From positions 62,001 through 126,000 of IMG/VR virus record IMGVR_UViG_3300003877_000001: 64,000 nt of DNA. The stretch is one strand, 5' to 3'. Shown here in pieces: positions 10,278 to 57,460 of this stretch; positions within the stretch are counted from its first letter, which is position 1, and every line of letters starts with the position of its first letter. Made by a program: the position numbers and the translations under genes. Below the pieces are notes generated by a model, which worked only from the letters and a program-made list of their open reading frames with translations, searched no databases and was not told where the DNA came from.

Positions 10278-12697
10278 TGGGATTTAAACCTACAAAAGAA
10301 CAAGAAAAAATATTTCACTTCATTAAAAACAGAAAAGAAAACCTATTAATTGGTGCTCTTGCAGGTTGTGGTAAAACAACTACTGTTGTTGAAGGGTCTA
10401 AATTATTACCCAAAGATTCTAAAAAAATATATCTTGCATTCAATAAACATATTCAAATGGAATTGAAACAAAGATTACCAGATGATGTATTTTGTTATAC
10501 ATTTCATGGATTGGGTATGCAAGCAATTAAAAATGTATATGGGGATTCTATTAAATTTGATGAATTTAAAGTAGATGATATTGTTAATAAAAAATCAAAA
10601 AAATGGAATCTTAGTAGTGAACTACATAATAAAGAAGATATTGGTATATATTTAGGTAGAATAAAAAAGTTTGTTAATCTATGTAGATTAACAATAACAC
10701 TAGATAAAAAATATTTACCACATCTTTCAACTAAATATGATATAGAATTAGATGAACCTAGAGATCATAAAAGAGTATTTTCTGTTTTAGAAGAAATACT
10801 TAATGATCGTAAAACATTTGATTTTACAGATATGGTATTTTTACCTGCAATTGATAATAAAATTTGGATGTATCAATATGATAATGTAATGGTTGATGAA
10901 ATTCAAGATTTAAATCGTGCACAACAATATATATTAAAGAAAATTTTAAAGAAAGATAGAATATCTAAAAAGACTACTGGTAGATTAATTGCGGTTGGGG
11001 ACGTTAATCAATGTCAACCTAAAGGTAGTAAAATATTGATGCACGATGGTAGTGAAAAAAATATTGAGGACATTAAGAAGGGTGATTTTGTTGTTTCATA
11101 TAATAGAAAAGAAAAGGGTCGGTTTGTTGGAAGATATAAAAACAAAATGAGTGATTGGTTAAAAGAAAGAGCACCAATGGTTGAAGAAGTTTCTAAAAGA
11201 AAAATATATGAAAACTTAATAAAAATTAGTTCAAATAATAAAATTTCATCATATACTGAAAACCATAAAACTATGGTTAGATTTAAAAAAGAATCATTAA
11301 ATAAACATATTTTATATTTAATGAAAAAGGATGATAAGTATAGAATTGGTATTGTTAAACTATGGAACGGAAAAAATGATTTTGGATCATTCAGAGCAAG
11401 ACAAGAATCTGCCGATTCTTTTTGGATATTAAATACATATAATAATAAATTTGAAGCATACAGTGATGAACAATATTATTCATTAAAATATAAAATACCA
11501 CAATTAATTTTTAATTATAGAGATCAAAAGGGTAATATTAATCAAAAATATATTGATAAATTTTATAATAGAATAGACCTAAATGAATTACATAGTAACA
11601 TTTTTTTATTATTAAAAAATTTTAATAAAAGCATTGATTATCCCTTTTGGGAAAAAAATAAACATCAATATTTTAGTAAAAATCATATGTTTGAATTATA
11701 TGCAGTGAATATTCTTCCTAATGATATGGAAATGATCCATTATGATGTAAATAATACAGCAATTAGAACACATGGAAAAGGTTATCCATCTAAAATAGTT
11801 AAACCAACATATAAATCTATTGATTCTTTAGAATATGTACATTACTCTGATTATGTATATTCATTAAAAATAAAAAAATATGAATTATATGTTGCTGATG
11901 GTATTTTAACACATAATAGTATTTACGGATTTTCTGGTGTATCTGATAAATCATATGATTGGTTTCTTAAATTTCCTAATACAAAAATATTACCACTCAC
12001 TACTACATTTAGATGTGCTAAGAATATTGTTATAGAAGCACAAAAGATAGTGCCTACGCTACAAGCGTTACCTAATGCGATAGATGGCATCGTAAGAGAG
12101 GGTAGTGTCTTAGACGAGCCTGAAGATGGTGATTTTGTATTGTGTAGAACTACTACTCCATTAATAAAACTATTTTTTCATTATTTATTAGATGGTAAGA
12201 AAGCTGTTATTAAAGGAAGTGATATGGGAATATCATTAATTGAAATGGTACAAGGTCATAAAACACTATCACAATTAATGGCATTTTATACAAATGAATT
12301 AAAAAAATATGAAGCAGCTTTAAGAAAAAGAGGTATTCTTAATTATAGTGATGATAGTAGATATGTTGCTTTACAAGATAATGTTATGACGTTAGATTTT
12401 ATGGCTAAACTATCTACGGATATTGCAGACTTAAAAGATAAAATTAAAATGATATTTAGTGATGATTTATTTGGTATTGTTTTAAGCACTGTACATAAAT
12501 CAAAAGGATTAGAAGCAAGTCGAGTATTTATAGCAAGACCAGATAAAATGCCTCTACCAACAAAAAAAGCATGGCAATACCAACAAGAAATGAATTTAAA
12601 ATATGTTGCAATAACAAGAGCAAAACACGAACTAGTATTTGATTATGAATGGACTGATGAAGAAGAGGGTGGTAGTTTTGATATAGAAGAAGAATAA
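10277..12697 (+). CDS. UvrD/Rep SF1 helicase, intein-containing
   Basis: ALAGCGKTT, VDEIQD, VGD..Q|SIYGF.G, TVHKSKGLE, YVAITRA. Confidence 0.92.
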   Translation: MGFKPTKEQEKIFHFIKNRKENLLIGALAGCGKTTTVVEGSKLLPKDSKKIYLAFNKHIQMELKQRLPDDVFCYTFHGLGMQAIKNVYGDSIKFDEFKVDDIVNKKSKKWNLSSELHNKEDIGIYLGRIKKFVNLCRLTITLDKKYLPHLSTKYDIELDEPRDHKRVFSVLEEILNDRKTFDFTDMVFLPAIDNKIWMYQYDNVMVDEIQDLNRAQQYILKKILKKDRISKKTTGRLIAVGDVNQCQPKGSKILMHDGSEKNIEDIKKGDFVVSYNRKEKGRFVGRYKNKMSDWLKERAPMVEEVSKRKIYENLIKISSNNKISSYTENHKTMVRFKKESLNKHILYLMKKDDKYRIGIVKLWNGKNDFGSFRARQESADSFWILNTYNNKFEAYSDEQYYSLKYKIPQLIFNYRDQKGNINQKYIDKFYNRIDLNELHSNIFLLLKNFNKSIDYPFWEKNKHQYFSKNHMFELYAVNILPNDMEMIHYDVNNTAIRTHGKGYPSKIVKPTYKSIDSLEYVHYSDYVYSLKIKKYELYVADGILTHNSIYGFSGVSDKSYDWFLKFPNTKILPLTTTFRCAKNIVIEAQKIVPTLQALPNAIDGIVREGSVLDEPEDGDFVLCRTTTPLIKLFFHYLLDGKKAVIKGSDMGISLIEMVQGHKTLSQLMAFYTNELKKYEAALRKRGILNYSDDSRYVALQDNVMTLDFMAKLSTDIADLKDKIKMIFSDDLFGIVLSTVHKSKGLEASRVFIARPDKMPLPTKKAWQYQQEMNLKYVAITRAKHELVFDYEWTDEEEGGSFDIEEE
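11012..11917 (+). mobile_element. intein (302 aa) in helicase motif III
   Basis: Starts CQPKGSKILMHDG, block B TENH, ends YVADGILTHN followed by Ser. Confidence 0.92.
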
Positions 12698-12699
12698 TT

Positions 12700-13008
12700 A
12701 TGAAGAAAAAACTAAGTATACTTGAAAAATTACCTAATGGTGAGGTAGTAGAACCTAATGTAAGATTAATGATTGATATTCATTTGGATAGGTTAACATT
12801 AATAATTCAGAAAAAATTAAAATCTATGGAAATTAGAGAAGAATTTTCTGAAACATTCCAAATTGATGAAAAAACACCAATAGATGATATTATAAATGAT
12901 TTTTATTTAAAATATCTTAAATTAAAAGATATTGAAATATATTGGGACAATACATTAAAAGATACTGAAGTTATTGAATTTGATTTATTGAATGAGGATG
13001 AAGATTAA
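12700..13008 (+). CDS. hypothetical protein
   Basis: ORF track. Confidence 0.5.
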   Translation: MKKKLSILEKLPNGEVVEPNVRLMIDIHLDRLTLIIQKKLKSMEIREEFSETFQIDEKTPIDDIINDFYLKYLKLKDIEIYWDNTLKDTEVIEFDLLNEDED

Positions 13009-13355
13009 TTACTAAAACCACCACCTTCATCGGTTCTGATATTATTTAAATCTCTAAATCTATTGTTAATACCTTCAATATTTCCATTAAGAGTACCAAT
13101 ACCCATATATAATTCTTGAAGATTACTATTCATATCATCTAATCCTGTTGAAATTTTTTCTTCAATTTTAACCATTTTAGTTTCATGATCATACAATTTG
13201 GGTACAATGAATATAGAATAAAACCCATACATAATACTTAATATCCCTAGAAGGAAACTAATTACATGTTTAAATCCTACTTCTATTTTTGTTTGTTCGT
13301 TTAGTTTTTTTGACATTTTAGTTAAATTCTTGGTTCGTAAGCTGAAGATTCCCAT
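13005..13355 (-). CDS. membrane/coiled-coil protein
   Basis: One TM helix then heptads; true start may be a downstream Met. Confidence 0.5.
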   Translation of the reverse strand: MGIFSLRTKNLTKMSKKLNEQTKIEVGFKHVISFLLGILSIMYGFYSIFIVPKLYDHETKMVKIEEKISTGLDDMNSNLQELYMGIGTLNGNIEGINNRFRDLNNIRTDEGGGFSN

Positions 13356-43093: not shown

Positions 43094-43164
43094 CACCCAT
43101 AATAGGTTACGCTCCTATGGCTCAACATTCAAAGTGTTGCGAGTTACTATTACCCCATATGGGA
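43094..43164 (-). tRNA. tRNA-Gln(UUG), atypical T loop
   Basis: CAACA-CTTTGAA-TGTTG anticodon arm; T arm ATAGG-AGCGTAA-CCTAT. Confidence 0.75.
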
Positions 43165-43172
43165 ATATTTTG

Positions 43173-43245
43173 GGTGTTCGACCAGAATCGAACAGGCATT
43201 ACTTGAATCACAATCAAGCGTGTTTACCGTTATACTACGAACACC
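43173..43245 (-). tRNA. tRNA-His(GUG)
   Basis: CTTGA-TTGTGAT-TCAAG; G-1:C73 pair. Confidence 0.9.
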
Positions 43246-43250
43246 ATTTG

Positions 43251-43323
43251 CTGACCTATCTGGAATCGAACCAGAATCTCCAAATTCAAAATTTGGCGTA
43301 ATAAACCGTTATACAATAAGTCA
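43251..43323 (-). tRNA. tRNA-Gln(UUG)
   Basis: CCAAA-TTTTGAA-TTTGG; GGTTCGATTCC. Confidence 0.92.
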
Positions 43324-43328
43324 ATATG

Positions 43329-43401
43329 GGTGTTTAATGGAAATCGAATCCATACCTTCGGGGTCACGACCCGACAATGCTACCGTTACAACATAAACAC
43401 C
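43329..43401 (-). tRNA. tRNA-His(GUG), C33 variant
   Basis: TCGGG-TCGTGAC-CCCGA; G-1:C73 pair. Confidence 0.85.
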
Positions 43402-43406
43402 ATGTG

Positions 43407-43463
43407 ATAACTTTTCATATATGAAACAAAAACAATCAATATGTTTCATATATGAAAAGTTAT
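43407..43463. repeat. perfect 22-bp inverted repeat between tRNAs
   Basis: ATAACTTTTCATATATGAAACA ... TGTTTCATATATGAAAAGTTAT. Confidence 0.9.
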
Positions 43464-43466
43464 AAG

Positions 43467-43542
43467 TCGGGTAAGAGGGAATCGAACCCCCATGATGTCT
43501 TCGTCCCAAACGAAGCGACTTACCTGATTAGTCCATTACCCG
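43467..43542 (-). tRNA. tRNA-Pro(UGG)
   Basis: CTTCG-TTTGGGA-CGAAG; C1-G72, A73. Confidence 0.92.
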
Positions 43543-43568
43543 ATATTAATAAATCAAAGAACAATAAG

Positions 43569-43644
43569 TCTAAGTGACAGGAGTTGAACCTGTAAATAAT
43601 CTCGATTCCAAGTCGAGCAACCACACCTCATGGATCGCACCTAG
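43569..43644 (-). tRNA. tRNA-Pro(UGG)
   Basis: CTCGA-CTTGGAA-TCGAG; C1-G72, A73. Confidence 0.85.
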
Positions 43645-43689
43645 ATATTTAATATTAAAATTTGTAACGTTTTACAAAAGTATGAACAT

Positions 43690-43724
43690 AAAAAAACCCT
43701 GTTCATTTTGATGTGAACAGGGTT
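43690..43724 (-). terminator. intrinsic terminator of attenuator 1
   Basis: AACCCTGTTCA-CATCAAAA-TGAACAGGGTT-TTTTT on minus strand. Confidence 0.9.
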
Positions 43725-43749
43725 CTATTAATTATTATAATTACAATAG

Positions 43750-43833
43750 TTAACTAGACATATTCTCCCCGTTCAACATCTGATGTTGATGCTGCGGTTG
43801 GGGTTGACCTACTATGTTAACTAATCTTTTCAT
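43750..43833 (-). CDS. leader peptide MKRLVNIVGQPQPQHQHQMLNGENMSS
   Basis: 27 codons with CAA CCC CAA CCG CAG CAT CAA CAT CAG run, upstream of terminator and Pro/His/Gln tRNAs. Confidence 0.88.
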   Translation of the reverse strand: MKRLVNIVGQPQPQHQHQMLNGENMSS

Positions 43834-44088
43834 TGTTCTATTTTTTAATTCAACGCAATTATAATACATATAATTTAAATAAACAAGTCATTTTGCAAAA
43901 AACTTTTACCTACCCTCAGTTATTACACTAGGGAGAAGCTATTTTCTTTTCTTTTTTAAAGACTTAACTTAAACGTTTAAGCGATAACTTCGCTTTCTTG
44001 CTAATAAATACGTAGTACTTTAGGTTTTGGTTACAAAAATTTAAAATTTATTTTTATTAAACTATAATGTATTTATAATAAAGATTTT

Positions 44089-44544
44089 ATGAAAAGAAAA
44101 GAACTATATAGAGTAATCAATGAAGAACTGTCTGAATTTGATTTTTTAGGTATGACAGGTGTTAAAGACGAATTCGAACATAATAATCTTCTTAACTCAA
44201 AAGAATTCCAAACAAATTTAATTAAAGATATTATCACAAGCCTAAGTGATAAAAATAAATTCAAGAAATTTTCATCAACATTTGTAAATAAAGAAACTAA
44301 TGTTAATAATGATACTGAAAATATTGAATTAGAAATTGAATTAACATATACGTTTGATGAAAAAGATTATGATTTAATTTTATTTATTGATGGTGATCAA
44401 GAAAACGATAAAATAAATTTTGAAAATTTTGACATTAAATTATTTTCTAAAGCTGGTGATCAAATCAAAATGGGGTGGGTAGAAAAAAATAATGAGTTAT
44501 ATAAAAGACTAATTGAAAGTTTAATTCAACCATTTTTAGGATAA
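44089..44544 (+). CDS. hypothetical protein
   Basis: ORF track; L...INEEL N-terminus; TATTTATA upstream. Confidence 0.55.
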   Translation: MKRKELYRVINEELSEFDFLGMTGVKDEFEHNNLLNSKEFQTNLIKDIITSLSDKNKFKKFSSTFVNKETNVNNDTENIELEIELTYTFDEKDYDLILFIDGDQENDKINFENFDIKLFSKAGDQIKMGWVEKNNELYKRLIESLIQPFLG

Positions 44545-47002: not shown

Positions 47003-47018
47003 AAAACTTGCATCTTAA

Positions 47019-47045
47019 CTAAACCTTTTTTATATTTGCAACGTA
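47019..47045 (+). promoter_or_regulatory. overlapping Bacteroidota -7 box (TATATTTG) and ECF-like AACC-N16-CGTA promoter
   Basis: CTAAACCTTTTTTATATTTGCAACGTA upstream of leader 2. Confidence 0.6.
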
Positions 47046-47089
47046 TTTAATATAGAACAAAGTATAATAACTTTAAAATAATTAAAAAG

Positions 47090-47209
47090 ATGAAGAATTC
47101 AAGAACAATTTTAAACACCAATATGGAAGCCATGTTATGGTCAGTTGCGGAAGCAGTTGAGGTGGACGATTTGTGTCTAGGGTCTTCAGGAGAAGGTGAA
47201 TTAGTTTAA
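47090..47209 (+). CDS. leader peptide MKNSRTILNTNMEAMLWSVAEAVEVDDLCLGSSGEGELV
   Basis: 39 codons; M/E/A/L/W/S/V/D control segment; terminator follows. Confidence 0.82.
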   Translation: MKNSRTILNTNMEAMLWSVAEAVEVDDLCLGSSGEGELV

Positions 47210-47234
47210 CTACTAAAACATCCAAACGAAATTG

Positions 47235-47264
47235 AAGACCCAATCCTAACAGATTGGGTTTTTT
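47235..47264 (+). terminator. intrinsic terminator of attenuator 2
   Basis: AAGACCCAATC-CTAACA-GATTGGGTTTT-TT. Confidence 0.9.
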
Positions 47265-47286
47265 GTTTTATAAGGGTTTAGAAATT

Positions 47287-47430
47287 ATGATAAGAGTTTA
47301 TATTGAAGATAAAGAAAAGGGTGTAGTATTTGCGTACATAAAAGATGTACCAGCAATTTGCAGCCAAGGTAAAACAAAAGAAGAAGTCGATAAAAAGATT
47401 GATAAGTATTTTGAAGTGATTAAAAAGTAA
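47287..47430 (+). CDS. orphan HicB-family antitoxin-like protein (47 aa)
   Basis: MIRVYIEDKEKGVVFAYIKDVPAICSQGKTKEEVDKKIDKYFEVIKK matches the HicB N-terminal pattern (P...SQG.T.EE). Confidence 0.7.
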   Translation: MIRVYIEDKEKGVVFAYIKDVPAICSQGKTKEEVDKKIDKYFEVIKK

Positions 47431-47432
47431 AT

Positions 47433-47502
47433 GGGTCTGATGCTAAAGGCAGGTCGTTGGTTTTGCATACCAAACGTTTCGGTTCGATTCCGACAGTATC
47501 CA
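47433..47502 (+). tRNA. tRNA-Ala(UGC), irregular acceptor stem
   Basis: TTGGT-TTTGCAT-ACCAA; G3.U70. Confidence 0.7.
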
Positions 47503-47637
47503 CAATAAAGTTATTTGACGTATTGTTTATTAAAAAATTATTTGTGAAGAGAGAGCAGAGACTCTTGACGGCAGCACTATAATGGTGGCTTCGAACAAAT
47601 ACATGTCGTGTGTATTGTCCGTGATAAGCAAATATAT

Positions 47638-47709
47638 GGGGAGTTAGTATAATGGCTATTATTATTGACTTGCACTCAATGGATAAGGGTTCGACTCCCT
47701 TACTCTCCA
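47638..47709 (+). tRNA. tRNA-Ala(UGC)
   Basis: ATTGA-CTTGCAC-TCAAT; G3.U70, A73. Confidence 0.93.
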
Positions 47710-47711
47710 CT

Positions 47712-47883
47712 AATGTTGAAAGGAAGCGGTTGTTTATAGACTATCGACAGCATAAGATTAGTATCGGCTTTATGTGTAATATGACGACTCTAACATGGTC
47801 TGGCTTTTCCAACATCATATATTGAAACCGTACTCGTACTGTTAGATTACACCAATATGTGAAAGAACTATAAACTCAACATT
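47712..47883 (+). ncRNA. rod-like structured RNA candidate
   Basis: Nested pairings AATGTTGA/TCAACATT, GTTTATAG/CTATAAAC, GTGTAAT/ATTACAC, TCTAACA/TGTTAGA. Confidence 0.6.
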
Positions 47884-47888
47884 TATTT

Positions 47889-47960
47889 GCTCGGTTCGTC
47901 TAACGGTTAGGACGGGTGGTTTTCAGCCATCAGATAGGGGTTCGATTCCCCTACCGAGTA
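47889..47960 (+). tRNA. tRNA-Glu(UUC)
   Basis: GGTGG-TTTTCAG-CCATC. Confidence 0.92.
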
Positions 47961-48011
47961 CTTTTGGTCGTTTTTGTACCTTTGTAATATTTATAATTAA
48001 ACATTGTAAAT

Positions 48012-48656
48012 ATGGCAAGAAAACAAAAGAAATATCATTATTTGTATAAGACAACAAATAATTTAAACGGTAAATACTATTATGGTATGCATAGTACTGA
48101 TGATTTAAATGATGGTTATTATGGTTCAGGTAAAAGATTAAGATATTCGATTAATAAATATGGTAAAGAAAATCATAGTGTTGAAGTATTAGAGTTCTTT
48201 GAAAATAGAATTGATTTAAAAAATAAAGAAAAGGAGATTATTAATTTAAATGAAATTGCCAAAAAAGATTGTATGAATTTAGTTGTTGGTGGTGGTGGTG
48301 GATTAATAGGATTATCTGAAGACAAAAGAGAAAATATTCGTAATGGTGCATCTAAATTTTTAAAAGAAAAATGGAAAGACCCTTCATATAGAAAAATGCA
48401 AATAAAACTTTCTTCGGAAAGAATAAAAAAAACACATAAAGAAGGAAAACTTAAATATAATAATTTTAAAAATAAATATCATAATGAAGAAAGTAAAAGA
48501 AAAATGAGTGAATCTAGCAAGGGAATGGGAAAAGGGAAAAGTAACTCCCAATATGGAACATGTTGGATAACAAAAAATGATGTTAATAAAAAAATTAAAT
48601 TATTTGATTTAAATGACTATATAAAAAACGATTGGATTAAAGGTCGTATAATATAA
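48012..48656 (+). CDS. GIY-YIG (Seg-like) homing endonuclease with NUMOD3
   Basis: YLYKTTN..NGKYYYGMH..DGYYGSG; HNEESKRKMSES. Confidence 0.9.
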   Translation: MARKQKKYHYLYKTTNNLNGKYYYGMHSTDDLNDGYYGSGKRLRYSINKYGKENHSVEVLEFFENRIDLKNKEKEIINLNEIAKKDCMNLVVGGGGGLIGLSEDKRENIRNGASKFLKEKWKDPSYRKMQIKLSSERIKKTHKEGKLKYNNFKNKYHNEESKRKMSESSKGMGKGKSNSQYGTCWITKNDVNKKIKLFDLNDYIKNDWIKGRII

Positions 48657-48663
48657 ATTTTGA

Positions 48664-48727
48664 TCCTTACCTTTGGTTTGGATTCTACAAAGGTTTTCAA
48701 CGTTGAACCCGTTAATCAACGTTGTTT
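48664..48727 (+). repeat. double-hairpin spacer element, copy 1
   Basis: TACCTT..GGT.TGGATT...AAAGGTTTTCAACGTTGAACC...TCAACGTTGTTT. Confidence 0.85.
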
Positions 48728-48729
48728 AT

Positions 48730-48805
48730 GATCGGTTCGTCTAATGGAACTAGGATAGGTGGGGTCAAAAGCCACCAGATAGAGGTTTAAATCCTTTACC
48801 GATTA
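48730..48805 (+). tRNA. tRNA-Glu-like paralog with aberrant 9-nt anticodon loop
   Basis: Body similar to tRNA at 47889; GGTGG-GGTCAAAAG-CCACC; T loop TTTAAAT. Confidence 0.6.
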
Positions 48806-48806
48806 C

Positions 48807-48940
48807 TATGAATTGTTAGTGGTGGAACAGGTATACACTATCACCGTTGAAGGTGGTTTGTAGGGGTTATAGAAAACCCCTGCTGCATGGTAACATGTGG
48901 GACATCCCTTGTAGGTTCGAGTCCTACCTAGTGGTTCATA
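48807..48940 (+). ncRNA. enlarged tRNA-like RNA (Ser/Leu-type D arm, two extra hairpins)
   Basis: 13-bp terminal stem, GTGGAACAGGTATACAC, GTAGG-TTCGAGT-CCTAC. Confidence 0.75.
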
Positions 48941-48946
48941 ATTTAT

Positions 48947-49019
48947 TGGGTGTTCGTCTAGTGGCAAAGGCATCTGTTTTACATGCAGAATATCGTGGGT
49001 TCGAGTCCCACACACCCAA
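48947..49019 (+). tRNA. tRNA-Val(UAC)
   Basis: TCTGT-TTTACAT-GCAGA. Confidence 0.92.
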
Positions 49020-49023
49020 CTGG

Positions 49024-49088
49024 TCTTTACCTTATGGTCTGGATTTAAAAAAGGTTTTCAACGTTGAACCAGATATCAACGTTGTTTT
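49024..49088 (+). repeat. double-hairpin spacer element, copy 2
   Basis: Near-identical to 48664-48727. Confidence 0.85.
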
Positions 49089-49092
49089 ATAT

Positions 49093-49165
49093 TCGCTCTT
49101 GGTGATCAACGGTAACATAGCAGTCTCCAAAACTGAAGATGAAAGTTCAAATCTTTCAGGGCGAG
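49093..49165 (+). tRNA. tRNA-Trp(CCA)
   Basis: GCAGT-CTCCAAA-ACTGA; G73. Confidence 0.88.
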
Positions 49166-49199
49166 CAAAGTAGTTGAAAATCAACTAGTTATAACATAA

Positions 49200-49270
49200 C
49201 GTCCATTGGTGTAATGATAACATGATCGGTTGTCTCCCGATTGCCGAGGGTTTGATTCCCTCATGGACGG
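49200..49270 (+). tRNA. tRNA-Asp(GUC)
   Basis: ATCGG-TTGTCTC-CCGAT; G73; pyrimidine at position 37. Confidence 0.8.
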
Positions 49271-49272
49271 CA

Positions 49273-49671
49273 AAATTTTGTAGTCGTTCTTGTGTTGGTA
49301 AATATAGAGCAAATAAAGTAAAAAAATCAAATAAAGTTAGACGAAGTAAAAATGAAATCTATTTTGCGGATTTATGTATAGAATATTTTAAAAATGTTGA
49401 AACTAATGAAAAAATTTTTAATGGATGGGATGCTGATGTTATTATTCACGATATTAAAATAGCAATTTTATGGAATGGTAAATGGCATTATGAAAAAATA
49501 ATCAAAAATCATTCAGTAAAACAAGTACAAAATAGGGATAGATTGAAATTAATTGAAATTAAAAATTATGGATATGAACCGTACATAATAAAAGATATGG
49601 GTTCATATAATAAAAAGTTTGTTGAAGAACAATTCAAAGAATTTATAAATGCCGATGTCGCCAAGTGGTAA
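49273..49671 (+). pseudogene. Vsr-like endonuclease, 5' end missing
   Basis: FCSRSC, SKNEI.F, WDADVII...AILWNG.WHY, RD..K; the listed start lies inside tRNA-Asp. Confidence 0.6.
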
Positions 49672-49722
49672 GGCACATTTCTCATAAGAATGTATACGAG
49701 TGTTCGATTCACTCCATCGGTA
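49651..49722 (+). tRNA. tRNA-Met(CAU) (elongator, or Ile2)
   Basis: CATTT-CTCATAA-GAATG. Confidence 0.88.
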
Positions 49723-49740
49723 CAAAATTTTTAAATAAAT

Positions 49741-49766
49741 TGTAACCTTTTAAAAAAGTTTACGTA
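49741..49766 (+). promoter_or_regulatory. ECF-sigma-like promoter TGTAACC-N15-CGTA
   Basis: Identical copy at 50223; variants at 46577, 54617, 63075 (+) and 15510, 44035 (-). Confidence 0.65.
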
Positions 49767-49776
49767 TTATAAATAT

Positions 49777-50220
49777 ATGGTTGATAAAGAAATATGTAGA
49801 TTTAAATATGAAGATATTGAATATCAAATAAGCCATTTAATATTTCAATATGGTAATATTAAAATTTCAATGCCTAGTATATTAATTACAACCAAATCTT
49901 CTAATAGTAAAAGAAGTACATATGTAAGTAAAACTGATGGACATTATAACTTAGTTGGATTGAATAACCCAATTAAATTAATTAGAAAAATTAGTAATAT
50001 TTACAATGATGAACTTAAATCTTTTGATTATGTTTGTTTTAGTGCACATACAGATGCAACAGATAAATGTACTGAAGTATATGGTGGCATTCTTAATAAA
50101 ATGGGATTTGTTAAATTATTAAATAATAAATATTATCATTTTTATAGTAGAAAAGATAAAAAACTAAAACGTAAAGAAGTTGTTAAAATTTTTAAAGATT
50201 TTGAAATTTATTTACATTAA
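49777..50220 (+). CDS. hypothetical protein
   Basis: ORF flanked by direct repeats of the promoter motif. Confidence 0.55.
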   Translation: MVDKEICRFKYEDIEYQISHLIFQYGNIKISMPSILITTKSSNSKRSTYVSKTDGHYNLVGLNNPIKLIRKISNIYNDELKSFDYVCFSAHTDATDKCTEVYGGILNKMGFVKLLNNKYYHFYSRKDKKLKRKEVVKIFKDFEIYLH

Positions 50221-50264
50221 TATGTAACCTTTTAAAAAAGTTTACGTATATTTGAAATATAAAC

Positions 50265-50336
50265 GGAGCATTGGTCTAACGGCTAGGATATATGACTATC
50301 ACTCATAGGGTAGGGGTTCGATTCCCCTATGTTCCG
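50265..50336 (+). tRNA. tRNA-Asp(AUC)
   Basis: TATGA-CTATCAC-TCATA; GGAGCAT/ATGTTCC stem, G73. Confidence 0.88.
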
Positions 50337-50346
50337 CACTGGTCAT

Positions 50347-50465
50347 TAAAGTATGGTGTAATGTGCACGATACTTCCATGTACCGACCAACGATAGCCTA
50401 TTAGTATGGTGACAATAGGTTGGCAACAGAAGTAAAGGATTAAGGTTAAATTCCTTATTACTTGA
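50347..50465 (+). ncRNA. tRNA-like RNA with extended anticodon arm
   Basis: D arm TGGTGTAATGTGCAC, TACTTC/GAAGTA enclosing about 50 nt, T arm TAAGG-TTAAATT-CCTTA. Confidence 0.55.
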
Positions 50466-50481
50466 AGACCTAAAAAAATAT

Positions 50482-50621
50482 GCTGTAATGGAATGAAGTG
50501 AAAACGATAAAGTATAATGCATTGAAATATCGTGGAAACTATTAGTCACTAGCGATAATTGGCATTAATCATTTAACATAGGGGTAATTTCCTATTATGG
50601 GTTCGAGTCCCCAATATGGCA
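50482..50621 (+). ncRNA. enlarged tRNA-like RNA
   Basis: GCTGTA/TATGGC ends; GGG-TTCGAGT-CCC T arm. Confidence 0.55.
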
Positions 50622-50706
50622 CAAAATTATGGTATGATGGAATTGGTATACATGTGGGTGTGACCTTCGAAAGAATAGGTGCAGATCAAACGGATATGTT
50701 AACAAA

Positions 50707-50808
50707 TGAAGTAAAAGGGTTAAATGATGATTTAAATGTCTTGGCTTAAAATAGTTTCAATATTTAAATATGTAGTTTATCGTTAAGGTTCAATTCCTTA
50801 TACTTCAC
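50707..50808 (+). ncRNA. enlarged tRNA-like RNA
   Basis: TGAAGTA/TACTTCA ends; TAAGG-TTCAATT-CCTTA; ATTTAAAT long arm. Confidence 0.6.
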
Positions 50809-50909
50809 AAAAGTCTGGCAGAAGTATGCGATAGGTACGACAATACCGATAGCAGAAAATGAAGGACACATTGAACTCGAAGCATTGTCGTGTGGAGATA
50901 GTAAATGTT

Positions 50910-50981
50910 TAACTAGTGGACAAGTGGTAAAGTCGCCCCTTTTAAATGGGGAGAACGTGGGTTCGAATCCTACCTAGTTAA
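50910..50981 (+). tRNA. tRNA with UAA-containing loop, short variable region (identity uncertain)
   Basis: TAACTAG/CTAGTTA; CCCC-TTTTAAAT-GGGG; GTGGG-TTCGAAT-CCTAC. Confidence 0.7.
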
Positions 50982-51209
50982 CTAAACTTCTGTGATGTGG
51001 AAGAATTGAAGTTCATGTTTGTTTAATATTTGGGTCGCTCCTGAATACTGACAATAAAGAATAGTTTATATTTGAGGTGAGTACGTATTAACCGATATAT
51101 GAAGTTACTATTTTGAATGAACGCACTTCGCACTCGTCAAAGGGAGAGAAAGCAGGTTCGATACCTGTCTACGCTACAAATATTATATCAAACGGATATA
51201 ATTTAAAAT

Positions 51210-51364
51210 TAACTAATGGCAGAGTGGCTTAATGCGGATGTCTAGTTCTATATGATTGATAGAGGGTGAACTTCTTTATCTTTTGCTCATGAACGGAAAC
51301 AATTACCCTGATTACGAGAAGCAAATATCGAAAGGGGTCATAGGTTCGAATCCTATTTAGTTAG
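51210..51364 (+). ncRNA. enlarged tRNA-like RNA with insertion in the anticodon loop
   Basis: TAACTAA/TTAGTTA; TGGCAGAGTGGCTTAATGC; GATGT/ATATC; ATAGG-TTCGAAT-CCTAT. Confidence 0.78.
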
Positions 51365-51397
51365 CAATATTATATCAAACGGATATAATGAAAATAT

Positions 51398-51616
51398 GAG
51401 GATGTGGTGGAAAGGTAAACACGCTTGTTTTAGAATAAGTACAAAGTTCATTTGGGAATAAATAATACTGATGAAGAGATGAATACCATAATGCTTACTG
51501 CTTAGTTGAACCAAGTTACCCTTCGGGATATGTCGGTAAAATAGAAATCGAAATCTAAATGATAGTAGAGGTAAGAGAGAAAGTCTGGTTTGAGGGTTCG
51601 AGTCCTTCCATCTTCA
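51398..51616 (+). ncRNA. 219-nt tRNA-Leu(UAG)-like RNA with giant variable region
   Basis: GAGGATG/CATCTTC+A; TGGTGGAAAGGTAAACAC; CTTG-TTTTAGAA-TAAG; GAGGG-TTCGAGT-CCTTC. Confidence 0.78.
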
Positions 51617-51655
51617 CTAAATTATATCAAACGGATATAATAAAAATTGAAATAT

Positions 51656-52009
51656 GGGGGTAACAGGAATTGACAGGATACGATAGGTAGACGGTGCAAG
51701 TATGAGGAAATTGCTCTACTCATTAAAAATAGGTAATGAACGTTTAAGTGGCGAAGCACTTGCAATGGCAGCATAACCGAAAGGTTTTTGTACCATTCGA
51801 GATACCACCAACTAGGTAGGTGTTCTCATAGATACTGATCACGTAAAGAGATCAAAAAATGTTGTGGAACATAAAACCAAAAAGTCTAATGTAATAAAGT
51901 GTTTGTAAATAAAAAACATAATGACTTAAAAATAATAAACAAACTAAACTTGTGAATGACTTTTTATTTGTAATATAACTGGACAGGAGTTCAAGTCTCC
52001 TTACTTCCA
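51656..52009 (+). ncRNA. ssrA: tmRNA, tag (A)GEALAMAA
   Basis: GGGGGTA..GGAATTGAC 5' end; tag ORF 51750-51776; TAAACTTGTGAA; GGAC-AGGAG-TTCAAGT-CTCCT-TACTTCC-A with G3.U70. Confidence 0.95.
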
Positions 52010-52015
52010 CAATAT

Positions 52016-52112
52016 GGTGATCTATTGGTATCTACACGCCTTTCATCGGGAAGTAGAAGGATAACTTTAATGATGAATATGAGTTATATTGGTTCGAATC
52101 CCCTGATCGCCA
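52016..52112 (+). ncRNA. non-canonical tRNA-like RNA
   Basis: GGTGATC/GATCGCC+A; GG-TTCGAAT-CC; two internal hairpins. Confidence 0.55.
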
Positions 52113-52130
52113 CTTAAATAAAAAACTAAT

Positions 52131-52544
52131 ATGGATATTGAAAAGTTTAAAAGGGATATGAAAGAAGATATGGAAAATCCTGATGGTTTCTTTGCTAGAT
52201 TGGCAAAAAAAAATGCTAATCTTGAGAAAAGATATAATAAATTTGAAAAATGGTTAGAAACAAACGAGTTTGAACCTATTTTCCAAAAATTGCTAGAAAA
52301 AAATGGTGATGAAAGAAGTACATATTGTTTTAATAAAGGACATGAAAAAAATGGTACACCTTTAATGGAATTTCTTTGTGGCTATATAACTACTAGAATT
52401 GAAACTGTTGAAAATGAAAAATTTAGTGGTGATTTTAGTTCTGGTATTTGGTTTTTTAAAGATTATTGGTTTCAATTAATTTGTGGTCAAGGATGTTTTT
52501 GGAAAATATATAATAAAGATTTTGAATGTATTGAACACGTATAG
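52131..52544 (+). CDS. hypothetical protein
   Basis: ORF track; ..GQG.F.. motif. Confidence 0.6.
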   Translation: MDIEKFKRDMKEDMENPDGFFARLAKKNANLEKRYNKFEKWLETNEFEPIFQKLLEKNGDERSTYCFNKGHEKNGTPLMEFLCGYITTRIETVENEKFSGDFSSGIWFFKDYWFQLICGQGCFWKIYNKDFECIEHV

Positions 52545-52613
52545 TGGAGCAATACTTGAAATGGTTAGAAGCCTTAAATGAAAATAGAGAATTAAGAATA
52601 AGATTAAATAAAG

Positions 52614-52811
52614 ATGTTTAATATAGGTTTTTTAATTGATAGATATTGGTGGGATATTAAACATAATAAACCACATAATTCTTTAATTGAAGGAGATACC
52701 TCTACAACAACTAACTTAGGATATTTTAAATTAGTAGATGATGAATATAAATTAACAGAGGAAGGTATTAAAAGTTATAAAAAAATGAGAAGAAATAATG
52801 AGAAAGAATAA
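52614..52811 (+). CDS. hypothetical protein
   Basis: ORF track. Confidence 0.4.
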   Translation: MFNIGFLIDRYWWDIKHNKPHNSLIEGDTSTTTNLGYFKLVDDEYKLTEEGIKSYKKMRRNNEKE

Positions 52812-52855
52812 AATACATAGTGAACGATTATCCACCACTGAAGCAGATTTAAGAT

Positions 52856-52930
52856 GCCAGCGTGGTGGACGTGGGAATACACGACATTTTTAAGCGATGT
52901 TTTTCGAGGGTTCGAGTCCCTCCGTTGGTA
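52856..52930 (+). tRNA. tRNA-Leu(UAA) with short variable loop
   Basis: GCCAGCG/CGTTGGT+A; ACATT-TTTAAGC-GATGT; variable loop TTTTC. Confidence 0.82.
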
Positions 52931-52981
52931 CTAATTTATTTTCGAATAGGCACACATAAAAAAATAAATCTAAAAAAGAAA

Positions 52982-53239
52982 ATGAGTGCAATAAACAACA
53001 GGGAGTATCCTAAATGTATATTTTGTGGAAAATTTTGCTTTAAACATAAAAGAAAATATTGTTCAAGAGATTGTTATAATAAAGACATGGAATTAAATAT
53101 TCCTAAAGTACCTGAATTATTAAAAATGTTTAAAAAATATAAAACATTTGTTAGGGTTGGGAAAGAATTTAATGTAAGTGATAATGCTGTTAGAAAATGG
53201 TGTATTAAATATGGTATATTAGAAATGATTAATAAATAA
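52982..53239 (+). CDS. Zn-finger/HTH protein (homing endonuclease remnant)
   Basis: CIFCG..YCSRDC; VGKEFNVSDNAVRKW; start re-called to MSAIN because the listed start lies in a tRNA. Confidence 0.55.
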   Translation: MSAINNREYPKCIFCGKFCFKHKRKYCSRDCYNKDMELNIPKVPELLKMFKKYKTFVRVGKEFNVSDNAVRKWCIKYGILEMINK

Positions 53240-53245
53240 TATAAA

Positions 53246-53509
53246 ATGAATAAAACAGAAATAAAGAAAGCATTATATAAGCAAAAGCCAAAGGCTGAAT
53301 TTACACATATTAGAAGAGGTATTGCTTATTATAATACAATATTAAGAATAGAAGAAGAACCATATAGTCATTCAGTATTTTTTGAAATACCTGTTGATGA
53401 TATGGGTGATGCAGACTTTGATAAGCAAATGGATGCAAAATTACTTAATCGTTGGATTGTTGATATACTCATTTTAACAAAAAAAGAAGGTGATTTAAAA
53501 ATGCCCTAA
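53246..53509 (+). CDS. conserved phage hypothetical protein
   Basis: EIKKALYKQKPKA...F.IP..DMGDA.F...M.AKLL.RW. Confidence 0.65.
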   Translation: MNKTEIKKALYKQKPKAEFTHIRRGIAYYNTILRIEEEPYSHSVFFEIPVDDMGDADFDKQMDAKLLNRWIVDILILTKKEGDLKMP

Positions 53510-53587
53510 TGGTGAAAAGGTAGACACGGCAGGTTCAAACCCTGTTGCTAATAAACTGGCGTGTAGGTTCGAATCCTACTTAGGGTA
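53503..53587 (+). tRNA. tRNA-Leu(CAA)
   Basis: GCAGG-TTCAAAC-CCTGT; long variable arm; A73. Confidence 0.93.
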
Positions 53588-53588
53588 C

Positions 53589-53906
53589 ATGAATGGAAAA
53601 GATGATATTGTTGGTGCAAAATTTGCTTTAGTTAAAGAAGGTGATTTAGTTGTTCATATGAGTAGGGAATCTTATGATGATTTAATGCATGAAGTTATTG
53701 AAGAGTTAAGAAAACAAATTATGATTAAAGTAAAAGAAGTTACAAAGTATATGGATGGTGGAACAACTAAATATATTGATGAAAAAGGTAATGAATATTT
53801 TAAAGACAATAGATTAGGTACAAAAACTAAAGGTAAAATTTTTGATAAATATCCTAAAGAAGAAGATGCTAAAATATTAGATGTTGAACTTGAAATATTA
53901 TTGTGA
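53589..53906 (+). CDS. hypothetical protein
   Basis: ORF track; DGGT motif. Confidence 0.5.
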   Translation: MNGKDDIVGAKFALVKEGDLVVHMSRESYDDLMHEVIEELRKQIMIKVKEVTKYMDGGTTKYIDEKGNEYFKDNRLGTKTKGKIFDKYPKEEDAKILDVELEILL

Positions 53907-54096
53907 TGAACAAAGACATTTAGTGTGTGTTCCTTATTCAAAAGAGAACCTACATTTGATGGCTGATGATTTAAACATCAAAAGATGTTGGTTTCATAAA
54001 GATCATTATGATATACCTAAAAGAAGAATAAAAGAAATAAGTGCAAAGTGCACAATAATTAATAGTAAAGAAATAGTTAAAATAATAAGAAAATGA
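53881..54096 (+). CDS. DUF4031-like protein
   Basis: HL....LH.MA..L.IKR.WF...HYDI. Confidence 0.65.
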   Translation: MLNLKYYCDEQRHLVCVPYSKENLHLMADDLNIKRCWFHKDHYDIPKRRIKEISAKCTIINSKEIVKIIRK

Positions 54097-54186
54097 ACAG
54101 AATTAACAACATATTTGAAAGTGAACAAGAGATTAATTCTGCTCTAGTGATATAGTATAACGGTCACCGAGCAGACGTAAAACTAT

Positions 54187-54261
54187 GCTCGGTTGGACAA
54201 CGGTAGGTTAAGTCACCACCCTTTCAAGGTGGTATAACGGGTTCGACCCCCGTACCGAGTA
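54187..54261 (+). tRNA. tRNA-Glu(UUC)
   Basis: CCACC-CTTTCAA-GGTGG. Confidence 0.93.
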
Positions 54262-54500
54262 CAAAAATAATAAATTTAAAGAGTCATATTGATTAGTGGG
54301 TTGGGTTTGATTTCGACTGTTACTCTGATCAGGGGTGTTATTAGCGGTTTAAAACGTGAACACATTTGTAAGTATTTGGTAGGTAAGTTCGACTCTTGCT
54401 ACTTATTAACAACACTAATTAATTTAACTTTTAAAATATGATTAGTTATCATATAAAAATATACTTAACTATTAACATATTGGTAGTTATAATGAAATAT

Positions 54501-54586
54501 TGTGAGTTGGAGAAGTTGGTATCTCGCTGGTTTCATAAGCCAGAGTCCCTACGGGGTTTACGGGGGTTCGAATCCCTCACTCGCTA
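54501..54586 (+). tRNA. initiator-like tRNA(CAU) with extra variable hairpin
   Basis: 1:72 mismatch; CTGGT-TTCATAA-GCCAG; variable CCC-TACG-GGG. Confidence 0.85.
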
Positions 54587-54817
54587 CTAAAAAGAATTAA
54601 AAATAAATAAGAAAATTGTAACATATTAAAAATATTTACGTATATTTGTAATATAACAGACAACAAAAGTTCCTATAATTTATATTTGGATAAAAAATAC
54701 TTTTCGTCTGTTTTTTTATAAATTAAAACATAAAGGTAAATGATGTTCCTATAAAACTCAATAGGGGAAACCCTATTTTTACTGTAAATACATCTCACCT
54801 TTTTAAAAAATTAAATT

Positions 54818-56572
54818 ATGAAAACTTTAGAACTATTTAATGCGGTTGTAAAAAAAGATACAAAAGATAATGTTTTTGTATCAGAAGATGGATATATTAT
54901 CGAATCTGGTGCTTTATGGGCAAAAGATAGAATTGTAACCTATTATAATAGTCGTAGATTAAATGGTAATGATTTAAATAAAACATTTCATAAATCATGG
55001 TTAAAAATAAAAAATAGTTCAAGATATGAACTATTGGTTGATCAAATAAAACATTATATATCTACATATGGTAGTGGATTTAAAGATGATGTTTATATCC
55101 CTGATGAAGTATTAGATATTTCAGGATTAAAAATATCATTTAAAGTTGTTAAAGCATATACTAAAGATGAATTAATTGATAAATCATTATCATTACTTCA
55201 ATCTGGTATTGCTTTGAAAGAAGAAACAATAAATGATTTATTATCAATTCTTGTAGATGAACTTGATTATGAATTTACTGGTAAAGAAAATATTCGTAAC
55301 AAAGAAGCAATAATTAAAATTGCAGATATATATGGGGTATTACCAATAGATACTATGGAGTTTTTTAGATATATTATCTATCGTACAACAGGACAATCAT
55401 TATTAATTAAAAATTATAAAATGATTGAATTGATAAAAGATAGTAATTATAATCCATCTGCACAATTTAAGAAATTTGGATTAGAAAAACTTTCTGAAAT
55501 ATTTAATAGATTTAAGCCGTTATTTTTAGCTTTTAAACCTAAATGTAGTGGTACTATTAATAGAATTTCAAAGTTATCTAAAAAATATCATAAGCCACTT
55601 CTTAGTAATCCATTAAATGAAGTAACTTCGGTTACATTTAATGAAGGTGATGATCACTGGTTAGATAATGCAACACCATTTGCTTTATTTAAAGCATTGT
55701 CTGCTTGTTGGACAAGAATGAATGGACAAGATGCTTTTGTATATAGAATTAGAAATGGTAAATCATTTGCTAAGATGAATTCTACTGATGCAGGTATTGC
55801 AGGATATAATTATGGACATATTCTTAATTATATTAAAAATAGATTTGATCTTTCAGGTAAGAAAATATTTCTTCCAGAAGATGTAGAATATGCTTTACCA
55901 ACATCTGAAAAGATGTACGTAGGTAATGTTCCAACAGGAACAAGATTCTATGGTAATGCTCTTGCTGTTGGTATTTATTGGAAAAACTCTTGGGGTGCAA
56001 CTGACCTTGATTTATCTGGTTTGAATATCGGTGGAAAAGTCGGTTGGAATTCAGATTATAAACAAGGTGGATCATTGTATTTCTCTGGTGATATTACCAA
56101 CGCACCTAATGGTGCTGTTGAGTATCTTTATGCAAATAGAGGACTTAGTGAACCAACTTTGGTAATGAATAATGTATTTAGTGGAAACCCTGATTCAGAA
56201 TTCAAGATCATCGTAGGTAAAGGTGATAATATCAATAAGAATTATATGATGAACCCTGAAAAGTTGTTCGTGGATATTAAGACACAATCAGTTCAAACTC
56301 AAAGTGTGTTAGGTATATTTCTTCCAGTTGGTAACGAGAGACAATCTTTTGTTATTTTGAACTTCGGTTCTGGTAGAGAACATATTTCTAGTTATGGTGA
56401 AGTTGCAAATATAACAACAAAGGCACTTTATCAACAATGGAACAATGCACTTACTTTGAGAGAAGTAATTGGAAAATTAGGTGTTGAATTTGTTACTGAT
56501 CCTGAAAAGGCAGATAATGATTTAAGTTTAAATACAATTGAAAAAGATTCTATAATGAATCTTTTTATATAA
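54818..56572 (+). CDS. stress-related protein with C-terminal TerD-like motifs
   Basis: GIYW....DLDLS...GWN....FSGDITNAP.GA.EY. Confidence 0.6.
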   Translation: MKTLELFNAVVKKDTKDNVFVSEDGYIIESGALWAKDRIVTYYNSRRLNGNDLNKTFHKSWLKIKNSSRYELLVDQIKHYISTYGSGFKDDVYIPDEVLDISGLKISFKVVKAYTKDELIDKSLSLLQSGIALKEETINDLLSILVDELDYEFTGKENIRNKEAIIKIADIYGVLPIDTMEFFRYIIYRTTGQSLLIKNYKMIELIKDSNYNPSAQFKKFGLEKLSEIFNRFKPLFLAFKPKCSGTINRISKLSKKYHKPLLSNPLNEVTSVTFNEGDDHWLDNATPFALFKALSACWTRMNGQDAFVYRIRNGKSFAKMNSTDAGIAGYNYGHILNYIKNRFDLSGKKIFLPEDVEYALPTSEKMYVGNVPTGTRFYGNALAVGIYWKNSWGATDLDLSGLNIGGKVGWNSDYKQGGSLYFSGDITNAPNGAVEYLYANRGLSEPTLVMNNVFSGNPDSEFKIIVGKGDNINKNYMMNPEKLFVDIKTQSVQTQSVLGIFLPVGNERQSFVILNFGSGREHISSYGEVANITTKALYQQWNNALTLREVIGKLGVEFVTDPEKADNDLSLNTIEKDSIMNLFI

Positions 56573-56719
56573 ATATTAAAGACGATTAGTAACACGTTGG
56601 CTTCGTGTTGAAATTGTGGGATAACGTGCCTGATAGCTGAAAAGCAAAAAGAACCACCCACTGAAAGGAAAGTTCGCAACTAAACCTGCTTTTCTAGTTT
56701 GAAACGTAAACTAGTATAT

Positions 56720-56803
56720 CGTGAGTTGGAGAAGTGGCATCTCGCTGTCCTCATAAGGTAGAGTCCCTACGGGTTTACGAAGGTTCGAGTCCTTCACTCG
56801 CTA
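56720..56803 (+). tRNA. initiator-like tRNA(CAU) with extra variable hairpin, copy 2
   Basis: C1:U72; CTGTC-CTCATAA-GGTAG; variable CCC-TACG-GG. Confidence 0.85.
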
Positions 56804-57460
56804 CTAAACTATAAGAATATGAAAAATAACATACCGCTTGGAAGCGGAATACATGTTAAATACTGTTACAGGTTCGTTGAGAACTTCACGTTTTTCTATC
56901 TCGTTAATCGAACAAGGTTAATCACCTTTTGCGGATCACGAATAGAATTTATCGGTGATTCCTCTCCCCCTTTATAGTCAAGATACTAATTATACTTGTG
57001 GATGTGCATGTATTAGAATGATATTAAATCATTTTTATGCACGATCCATTTAGAGGTGCTAAATCAAATTTCCAAATAAAGAAGTTTCTTAGAAATAATT
57101 GGAACATTAATCATAAAAAATATAATGTATCAGATAGTTATTATTCCGATTTAGTATTTGATCCAAAGATGGATAGAAAACGTTATTGGTTAGCATATAA
57201 GAAGGGGGATTAATTCTTCTTTCTTTTTAAAAATTTTTAAACTATATTTGTATTATGAGAAGTTTTGATTAAAGCAAAAAAATAATGGATAATACAATTG
57301 GAATATTTTTAATAACAAAGTTGTGAAAGTATGGTTGAAATTGATGGTTAAAAACCATTTCCAGAAGTAGATAAATTTAAATGGGTTGATTTTGATGATG
57401 CATTAGAATTAATTCATGATACACAAGTAATAGCATTAAATGAATATATAAGAAAATAAA

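Follow-up and report, generated by a model that had tools for sequence, protein, structure and literature searches.

The 64,000-nucleotide stretch of DNA analysed here (the window) is part of a 325,854-bp IMG/VR contig of an uncultured phage, and it carries two divergent tRNA arrays that flank a block of small genes. The contig has 27% G+C and encodes a major head protein, a portal and a large terminase. The capsid is distantly T4-like, and its nearest relatives are a Microcystis phage, uncultured huge phages and a Flavobacterium phage. Thirty-three of 35 genes lack a Shine-Dalgarno motif and have A/T-rich start contexts, which, together with TAnnTTTG-like -10 boxes, hints at a Bacteroidota host, although this is an inference only. 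Directly upstream of each array lies a compact unit made of a promoter (read from the sequence), a short ORF and an intrinsic terminator. We call the minus-strand unit (43886-43690) unit 1 and the plus-strand unit (47008-47265) unit 2. Their features are as follows.

47008..47036 (+): promoter of unit 2, with TTGCAT (47008-13), a 17-nt spacer and TATATT (47031-36); with the next two bases it also fits the Bacteroidota-type TAnnTTTG box (47031-38).
47090..47209 (+): leader ORF of 39 codons, with an A-rich, Shine-Dalgarno-less start context.
47091..47096 (+): segment 1 (UGAAGA), overlapping the start codon; it pairs with segment 2 in untranslated RNA.
47123..47173 (+): regulatory codons 12-28 (MEAMLWSVAEAVEVDDL).
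47180..47189 (+): segment 2 (GGGUCUUCAG), codons 31-34; it can pair with segment 1 or with segment 3.
47195..47222 (+): hairpin around the stop codon.
47232..47241 (+): segment 3 (UUGAAGACCC); it forms the antiterminator with segment 2 and overlaps the 5' arm of the terminator by ACCC.
47238..47265 (+): intrinsic terminator, with stem 47238-45 / 47252-59, loop 47246-51, then a T-run.
47287..47430 (+): 47-codon ORF of unknown function, starting 22 nt after the T-run.
47431..56804 (+): tRNA array, in the order Ala-like, Ala, Glu, Leu, Val, Trp, Asp, Met, Asp, Leu, an intron-bearing Leu-like tRNA, a tmRNA-like gene, Leu, Leu, Glu, Met, Met, with inserted ORFs between some of them.
43858..43886 (-): promoter of unit 1, with TTGTTT (43886-81), a 17-nt spacer and TATAAT (43863-58).
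43750..43833 (-): leader ORF of unit 1, 27 codons; codons 10-18 (43806-43780) are nine consecutive Gln/Pro/His codons.
43767..43775 (-): segment 2 of unit 1 (UGAACGGGG); it mimics the 3' arm of the terminator and pairs with 43722-43714.
43690..43726 (-): intrinsic terminator of unit 1, with 5' arm CCCUGUUCA at 43722-14 and 3' arm at 43705-43697, then T7.
43094..43644 (-): tRNA array downstream of unit 1, Pro, Pro, His, Gln, His, Gln.

The first-pass annotation had proposed that the ORF at 47090 is a multivalent attenuator leader for the main tRNA array, and its description of the sequence is confirmed. The 17-codon control segment uses only M, E, A, L, W, S, V and D, with varied synonymous codons, and GGGTCTTCAG at 47180-47189 forms nine Watson-Crick pairs plus one G-U with TTGAAGACCC at 47232-47241. 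Among the tRNAs, we confirmed Ala, Glu x2, Val, Trp, Asp(GTC), Asp(ATC), CAT x3, Leu(TAA) x2 and Leu(CAA) x2. The second 'Ala' (47439-47501) is sub-threshold in the window at 24 bits but is a good tRNA-Ala in relatives, and the 'UAG-like Leu' is probably the type II tRNA at 51398-51616, which has a 137-nt insert in its anticodon loop. In contrast, two side claims are not supported. No Ser(UGA)-like tRNA was found by ARAGORN or Rfam, and the internal promoter motifs, which would let distal tRNAs escape control, cannot be told from chance, as 104 promoter-like sites were found against 93 +/- 7.5 expected. Nevertheless, a conserved motif after the first Ala-like tRNA (around 47512-47527) resembles the -10 and start region of the unit itself and could drive the distal tRNAs independently.

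The G+C content of the unit 2 region is 0.40-0.44, like that of the tRNA genes, against about 0.25 for coding DNA, and its RNA folds better than all 200 shuffles (z = -4.0). The codon usage of the ORF falls in the lowest 0.7% of gene windows, with a GC3 of 0.36 against 0.12 for genes. Taken alone, these features would fit a small structured RNA as well as a leader. We asked whether the codon content is more than chance by translating the whole window in six frames, which gave 127,900 windows. Only two places reach 14 of 17 residues in {A,E,V,W,M,D}, namely this segment and an acidic low-complexity stretch inside a large protein, and only two places reach 16 of 17 when Leu is added. As for unit 1, its run of nine Gln/Pro/His codons occurs once in the six-frame translation. 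It precedes a strong terminator and tRNAs Pro, Pro, His, Gln and His, followed by a sixth tRNA seen only by Rfam, which carries a UUG (Gln) anticodon. Thus, one genome holds two unrelated leaders, each of which scores at the top of 128 kb of translated sequence for the amino-acid set of the array directly downstream on its strand. This is the strongest single argument that the match is functional.

A phmmer search of the 39-residue ORF against 1.84 billion representative proteins found one true relative at 82% identity. The two other hits are repeats in HYR-domain surface proteins, which we treat as chance. Homologues of the 47-codon ORF and of the 151-aa ORF at 44089 led to further contigs, giving in all seven distinct lineages of unit 2 in three clades and four lineages of unit 1 (L followed by a number designates the contigs of relatives below); the flanking protein is 53-85% identical across them. 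In one further contig, L014, unrelated GC-rich sequence is joined at segment 3; we treated it as chimeric or recombinant and left it out. A sister contig carries a 32-nt deletion that breaks the leader, which may be a real variant or an assembly error. Other searches gave nothing more. Gathering and permissive searches of Rfam 15 found no family, T-box and other riboswitches included, with only terminator-driven noise at E > 1. A blastn search against the INPHARED phages, a tblastn search with the neighbouring 151-aa protein and scans of GTDB genomes found nothing, and scans of IMG/VR with the peptide alignment and with clade-general DNA patterns returned only the source contigs. No other copy of the element exists in the window. 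The tRNA region of Flavobacterium phage immuto has four scattered tRNAs and no comparable leader.

In unit 2, the -35 hexamer, the 17-nt spacing, a TAnnnT-like -10 and the TGCAACG that follows it are conserved in all relatives. The ORF keeps its ATG, its frame and its stop position in seven lineages, with a length of 38-39 codons, whereas its N-terminal third and its tail change freely. There are four unrelated tails and one in-frame 3-nt indel, and we estimate roughly a 0.04 chance that the frame would survive without selection. The core reads MEAMLWSVAEAVEVDDL in the clade of the window, AMLWLDAAEAVEVDDL in L017 and DLAMLWLEAAEAVDMDEV in L022. Its sequence drifts (S->L, V->D/E, E<->D, V->M, L->V), with non-conservative changes among these replacements, yet 16/17, 16/16 and 18/18 residues, respectively, remain in {A,D,E,L,M,V,W}. 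This is not the behaviour of an ORF conserved as a protein regardless of tRNA content. Within the clade of the window, however, the core is nearly invariant at the nucleotide level, which also fits a structured RNA. The arrays downstream are Ala, Glu, Val, Trp, Met, Asp, with Leu in the window and L017. In detail, they read Ala, (Ala), Glu, Val, Trp, (Trp), Val, Met, Asp, (Asp) in the clade of the window and Leu, Leu, Glu, Ala, Glu, Val, Val, Met, Trp, Asp, Met in L017. Leu tRNAs were not seen in the short contigs of the nearest relatives. The single off-set codon of the window, Ser TCA, has no matching tRNA; it is Leu TTA/TTG in the other clades. The 47-codon ORF is present only in the clade of the window, where it is under purifying selection (8 synonymous against 3 replacement changes versus L007), and it has no Pfam or PHROG family. 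It is absent from L017 and L022, where the tRNAs follow the terminator directly, and the conserved target is therefore the array. Whether the 47-codon ORF or the first tRNA comes next, there is no room for a promoter after the terminator.

The promoter layout of unit 1 is conserved in L020 and L022. The leaders of unit 1 stay Gln/Pro/His with mostly third-position changes: within the run, variable sites at codon positions 1/2/3 number 1/1/5 and four codon columns vary only synonymously, which is a coding signature. Their arrays stay Pro/His/Gln. We had expected the L017 leader to lack His codons, as ARAGORN saw no His tRNA there, but the leader does have them, and Rfam plus inspection then revealed a His(GTG) tRNA that ARAGORN had missed, so that the match holds.

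The helices of unit 2 were examined in an alignment of eight sequences. The antiterminator, segment 2 with segment 3, is paired in 97.5% of cells with two compensatory pairs, whereas partners slid by 1-3 columns pair in 20-59% of cells and show none. The terminator is paired in 93.8% of cells with three compensatory pairs. Segment 1 pairs with 47183-88 of segment 2 in 100% of cells, with one compensatory pair (G-C to A-U), and this short helix of 6 bp is present in the MFE state of the free RNA. The sequence of the hairpin around the stop codon varies between lineages but a hairpin is kept, RNAalifold reporting four pairs with changes on both sides. In L007, C47241->U is matched by G47256->A in the terminator and by G47180->A in segment 2. 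In L017, the segment 2 C->U change is matched by G->A in segment 1, a synonymous AAG->AAA change, and by G->A in segment 3. Bases that covary with two different partners are what mutually exclusive helices predict, although, with only three deep clades found, each compensatory change is a single event. Duplex energies are -10 to -15 kcal/mol for 2:3, -6 to -9 for 1:2 and -10 to -15 for the terminator. In unit 1, segment 2 pairs with the 5' arm of the terminator in 97% of cells. In three of four lineages this pairing is better than the terminator helix itself, which has U-U mismatches there but two compensatory pairs elsewhere. The Gln/Pro/His codons lie in segment 1 of that unit, which pairs with segment 2 in the free RNA.

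We also folded the RNAs with a ribosome footprint masked (A site -15 to +11). For unit 2 of the window, the terminator probability is 0.88 in free RNA, at most 0.21 with the A site at codons 1-15 and 21-27, and 0.94-0.97 from codon 28 onward. The high values at codons 16-20 come from segment 1 re-pairing around the ribosome, which is sterically implausible. L010 and L011 behave similarly, but L016 shows weak contrast, and free L007 RNA favours the antiterminator, with almost no terminator. Full-length unit 1 always gives the terminator at equilibrium. When it is truncated before the 3' arm, a stall at codons 2-16 raises upstream pairing of the 5' arm of the terminator from 0.52 to 0.66-0.91, and to 0.88-0.91 on the Gln/Pro/His codons 10-16. 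These are equilibrium calculations that ignore sterics, and they are indicative only.

The best-supported reading, and in our view a likely one, is that of the first-pass annotation: unit 2 is probably a ribosome-mediated, leader-peptide transcription attenuator that gates the phage tRNA array, although, without transcript, ribosome or termination data, it is inferred that stalling changes termination, as are the sign of the response and the reach of the read-through transcript. In this model, transcription starts about 45 nt upstream of the ORF. Ribosomes that read codons 12-28 quickly would reach codons 28-39 while the polymerase is making the terminator, and would cover, or sit just beyond, segment 2, so that the terminator forms and transcription stops. 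If any of the codons for Met, Glu, Ala, Leu, Trp, Val or Asp is decoded slowly, because the matching tRNA is scarce or uncharged, the ribosome would stall upstream, leaving segment 2 free to pair with segment 3. The 5' arm of the terminator would then be taken and the polymerase would read through into the tRNA genes. In untranslated RNA, segment 2 would be held by segment 1 and the terminator would form. The result would be demand-driven, self-limiting expression of the phage tRNAs, with unit 1 doing the same for the Pro/His/Gln array.

Alternatively, the leader might sense decoding speed while its output is not intrinsic-terminator read-through as modelled, acting instead through Rho-dependent polarity, through processing or stability of the tRNA precursor, or with the opposite sign, where stalling lowers array expression. 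This remains possible, if unlikely. The codon match and the conservation of the ORF fit any translation-coupled mechanism, equilibrium folding is ambiguous for some lineages, and the last one or two regulatory codons lie close enough to segment 2 that a stall there would favour termination. However, the terminator and the overlapping antiterminator are both under selection, with covariation to alternative partners, which is specific to a terminator/antiterminator switch, and the modelled geometry would give read-through for stalls at 15 of the 17 regulatory codons.

A stand-alone small RNA gene, acting in trans or binding a protein, with the ORF and its codon content as by-products of a G-rich structured sequence, appears very unlikely. 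The G+C content, the fold z-score and the atypical codon usage would suit it, gene callers skipped the ORF in several relatives, and attenuator RNAs are known to moonlight as sRNAs. Nevertheless, no Rfam family matches, and this reading does not explain why replacements in the core stay within the tRNA set, why the frame and stop survive four unrelated tails, or why an unrelated second unit shows the same codon-to-array match with third-position variation. Least likely of all is a functional acidic micro-protein with a conserved helix (AMLW..AEAVEVDDL) whose gene the terminator merely ends: the core is conserved at the amino-acid level with partly conservative substitutions (E/D, V/M/L) and the 82%-identical 39-residue protein is on record, but V->D/E and S->L are not conservative, the N- and C-terminal thirds are unconstrained, the 22-nt gap to the next gene or tRNA leaves no promoter, so that the terminator must be read through, no Pfam, PHROG or other family was found, and neither unit 1 nor the alternative helices are explained.

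Phage tRNA genes are common, and the debate on why phages carry them covers codon bias, host tRNA turnover and escape from tRNA-targeting defences, but it has lacked any sign that phages monitor tRNA supply. A leader peptide whose codons mirror the array behind it would be direct evidence that the phage reads the decoding capacity of the cell and responds with matched tRNAs. The two units, with different codon sets and different arrays, serve as a natural control for each other. It is tempting to speculate, and we consider it somewhat more likely than not, that this phage lineage measures, codon by codon, how well the infected cell can decode the codons served by each of its tRNA arrays and switches on each array only when decoding falters. 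Such a viral tRNA-homeostasis circuit could also serve as a built-in alarm against tRNA loss, for example from host shut-off or from tRNA-cleaving defence systems. If the design recurs in other tRNA-rich phages, it would explain how viral tRNA arrays are regulated and would offer natural multi-tRNA sensors.

Full-text literature searches found no description of leader-peptide control of tRNA genes. In unit 2, tRNA genes lie downstream, with one optional 47-codon ORF, rather than the amino-acid biosynthesis, transport or aminoacyl-tRNA synthetase genes that seem to follow the leader-peptide attenuators described so far. The closest systems are probably the multivalent leaders of enterobacterial amino-acid operons, ilvL of ilvGMEDA (Ile, Leu, Val), thrL (Thr, Ile) and ivbL of ilvBN (Val, Leu). 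They appear to share with unit 2 a promoter-proximal short ORF rich in several kinds of regulatory codons, an intrinsic terminator with an overlapping antiterminator, a 5' segment that holds the antiterminator strand in untranslated RNA, and, in the proposed model, an outcome decided by ribosome position. In unit 2, however, the regulated genes would be tRNA genes and not biosynthetic enzymes, seven amino acids are represented rather than two or three, the codons are interleaved rather than in runs, and the element is in a virus whose host is probably not a proteobacterium. Unit 1 has the classical layout of the single-amino-acid leaders trpL, hisL, leuL and pheL, with its run of regulatory codons inside segment 1 and a segment 2 that mimics the 3' arm of the terminator. 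The helix energies given above for unit 2 seem to be of the same order as those of the trp attenuator. Unit 1 differs in that Gln, Pro and His would be sensed together and that the output would be a tRNA array. The pheST leader (pheM) and T-box riboswitches likewise tie expression of a component of the decoding machinery to the supply of the matching charged tRNA, but pheM controls a synthetase and T-boxes bind uncharged tRNA directly without a ribosome. Finally, in mgtP, the leader ORF of mgtCBR in Salmonella (PMC3641672), Pro codons couple decoding speed to the formation of alternative stem-loops, in this case to control a virulence and Mg2+ transport operon with no relation to tRNA genes.

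A second attenuator-like unit was found on the opposite strand, ahead of the Pro, Pro, His, Gln, His, Gln array. It comprises a promoter, a leader of 27 codons with nine consecutive Gln/Pro/His codons, an antiterminator and a terminator, and it is conserved in L017, L020 and L022, three contigs of related phages. Between its terminator and the first tRNA-Pro gene lies a palindrome, TTTGTAAAACGTTACAAA, which is conserved in L020 and might represent an operator or a processing hairpin. Also of note, a gene for a protein with a cREC_REC domain (PF20274, cyclic-phosphate processing receiver, E = 5e-18) is syntenic in all relatives between the two tRNA arrays, which hints at an RNA-repair or tRNA-damage theme. 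The positions of these features are as follows.

43690-43886, minus strand: second attenuator-like unit
43661-43678, minus strand: palindrome TTTGTAAAACGTTACAAA
45478-45903, plus strand: protein with a cREC_REC domain

The plus-strand tRNA array harbours additional features.

47431-47505, plus strand: Ala(TGC)-like tRNA
47512-47527, plus strand: motif GTTATTTGACGTATTG
48012-48656, 49222-49671 and 49777-50220, plus strand: ORFs located between tRNA genes
51398-51616, plus strand: type II tRNA with an insertion in its anticodon loop
51656-52012, plus strand: tmRNA-like gene

The Ala(TGC)-like tRNA abuts the stop codon of the 47-codon ORF. It is below threshold in this genome (24 bits) but is called as tRNA-Ala in several relatives, which suggests decay in the former. 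It is followed by the motif GTTATTTGACGTATTG, which is conserved in L022 and in L007, another related contig, and resembles the -10 and start region of the promoter of unit 2, the plus-strand attenuator-like unit. It is possible that this motif is an internal promoter, which would let distal tRNAs escape the attenuator. Further along, the three ORFs sit between tRNA genes where relatives have contiguous tRNAs. The first of them looks GIY-YIG-like by eye but has no Pfam hit. They are probably mobile insertions that break up the array.

The type II tRNA has a long variable arm, an insertion of 137 nt in its anticodon loop and a UAG-like (Leu) anticodon context, and it is probably an intron-bearing tRNA. 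As for the tmRNA-like gene, it lies inside the array and obtained 43 bits with Rfam, slightly under the gathering score of 47, at an E-value of about 1e-15. In the relative L017, ARAGORN calls a tmRNA with a tag peptide at 12974-13333. A putative phage-encoded ribosome-rescue RNA is located next to the predicted stall-sensing leaders.

The sister contig L002 (IMGVR_UViG_3300003876_000001), which is otherwise identical, has a 32-nt deletion inside the leader ORF of unit 2, at the equivalent of about 47111-47142, that removes codons 8-18 and shifts the frame. It may be a natural regulatory mutant or, alternatively, an assembly error. In contig L014 (positions 1-130), unrelated GC-rich sequence is joined to the element exactly at segment 3, the 3' strand of the predicted antiterminator, and the terminator, indicating either a chimeric assembly or a recombination breakpoint. 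Finally, further along the array of the relative L017, at 12521-12769, ARAGORN calls a tRNA with a UUA anticodon (a stop-codon reader) and a tRNA-Tyr with anticodon AUA, the first of which may be a suppressor tRNA.
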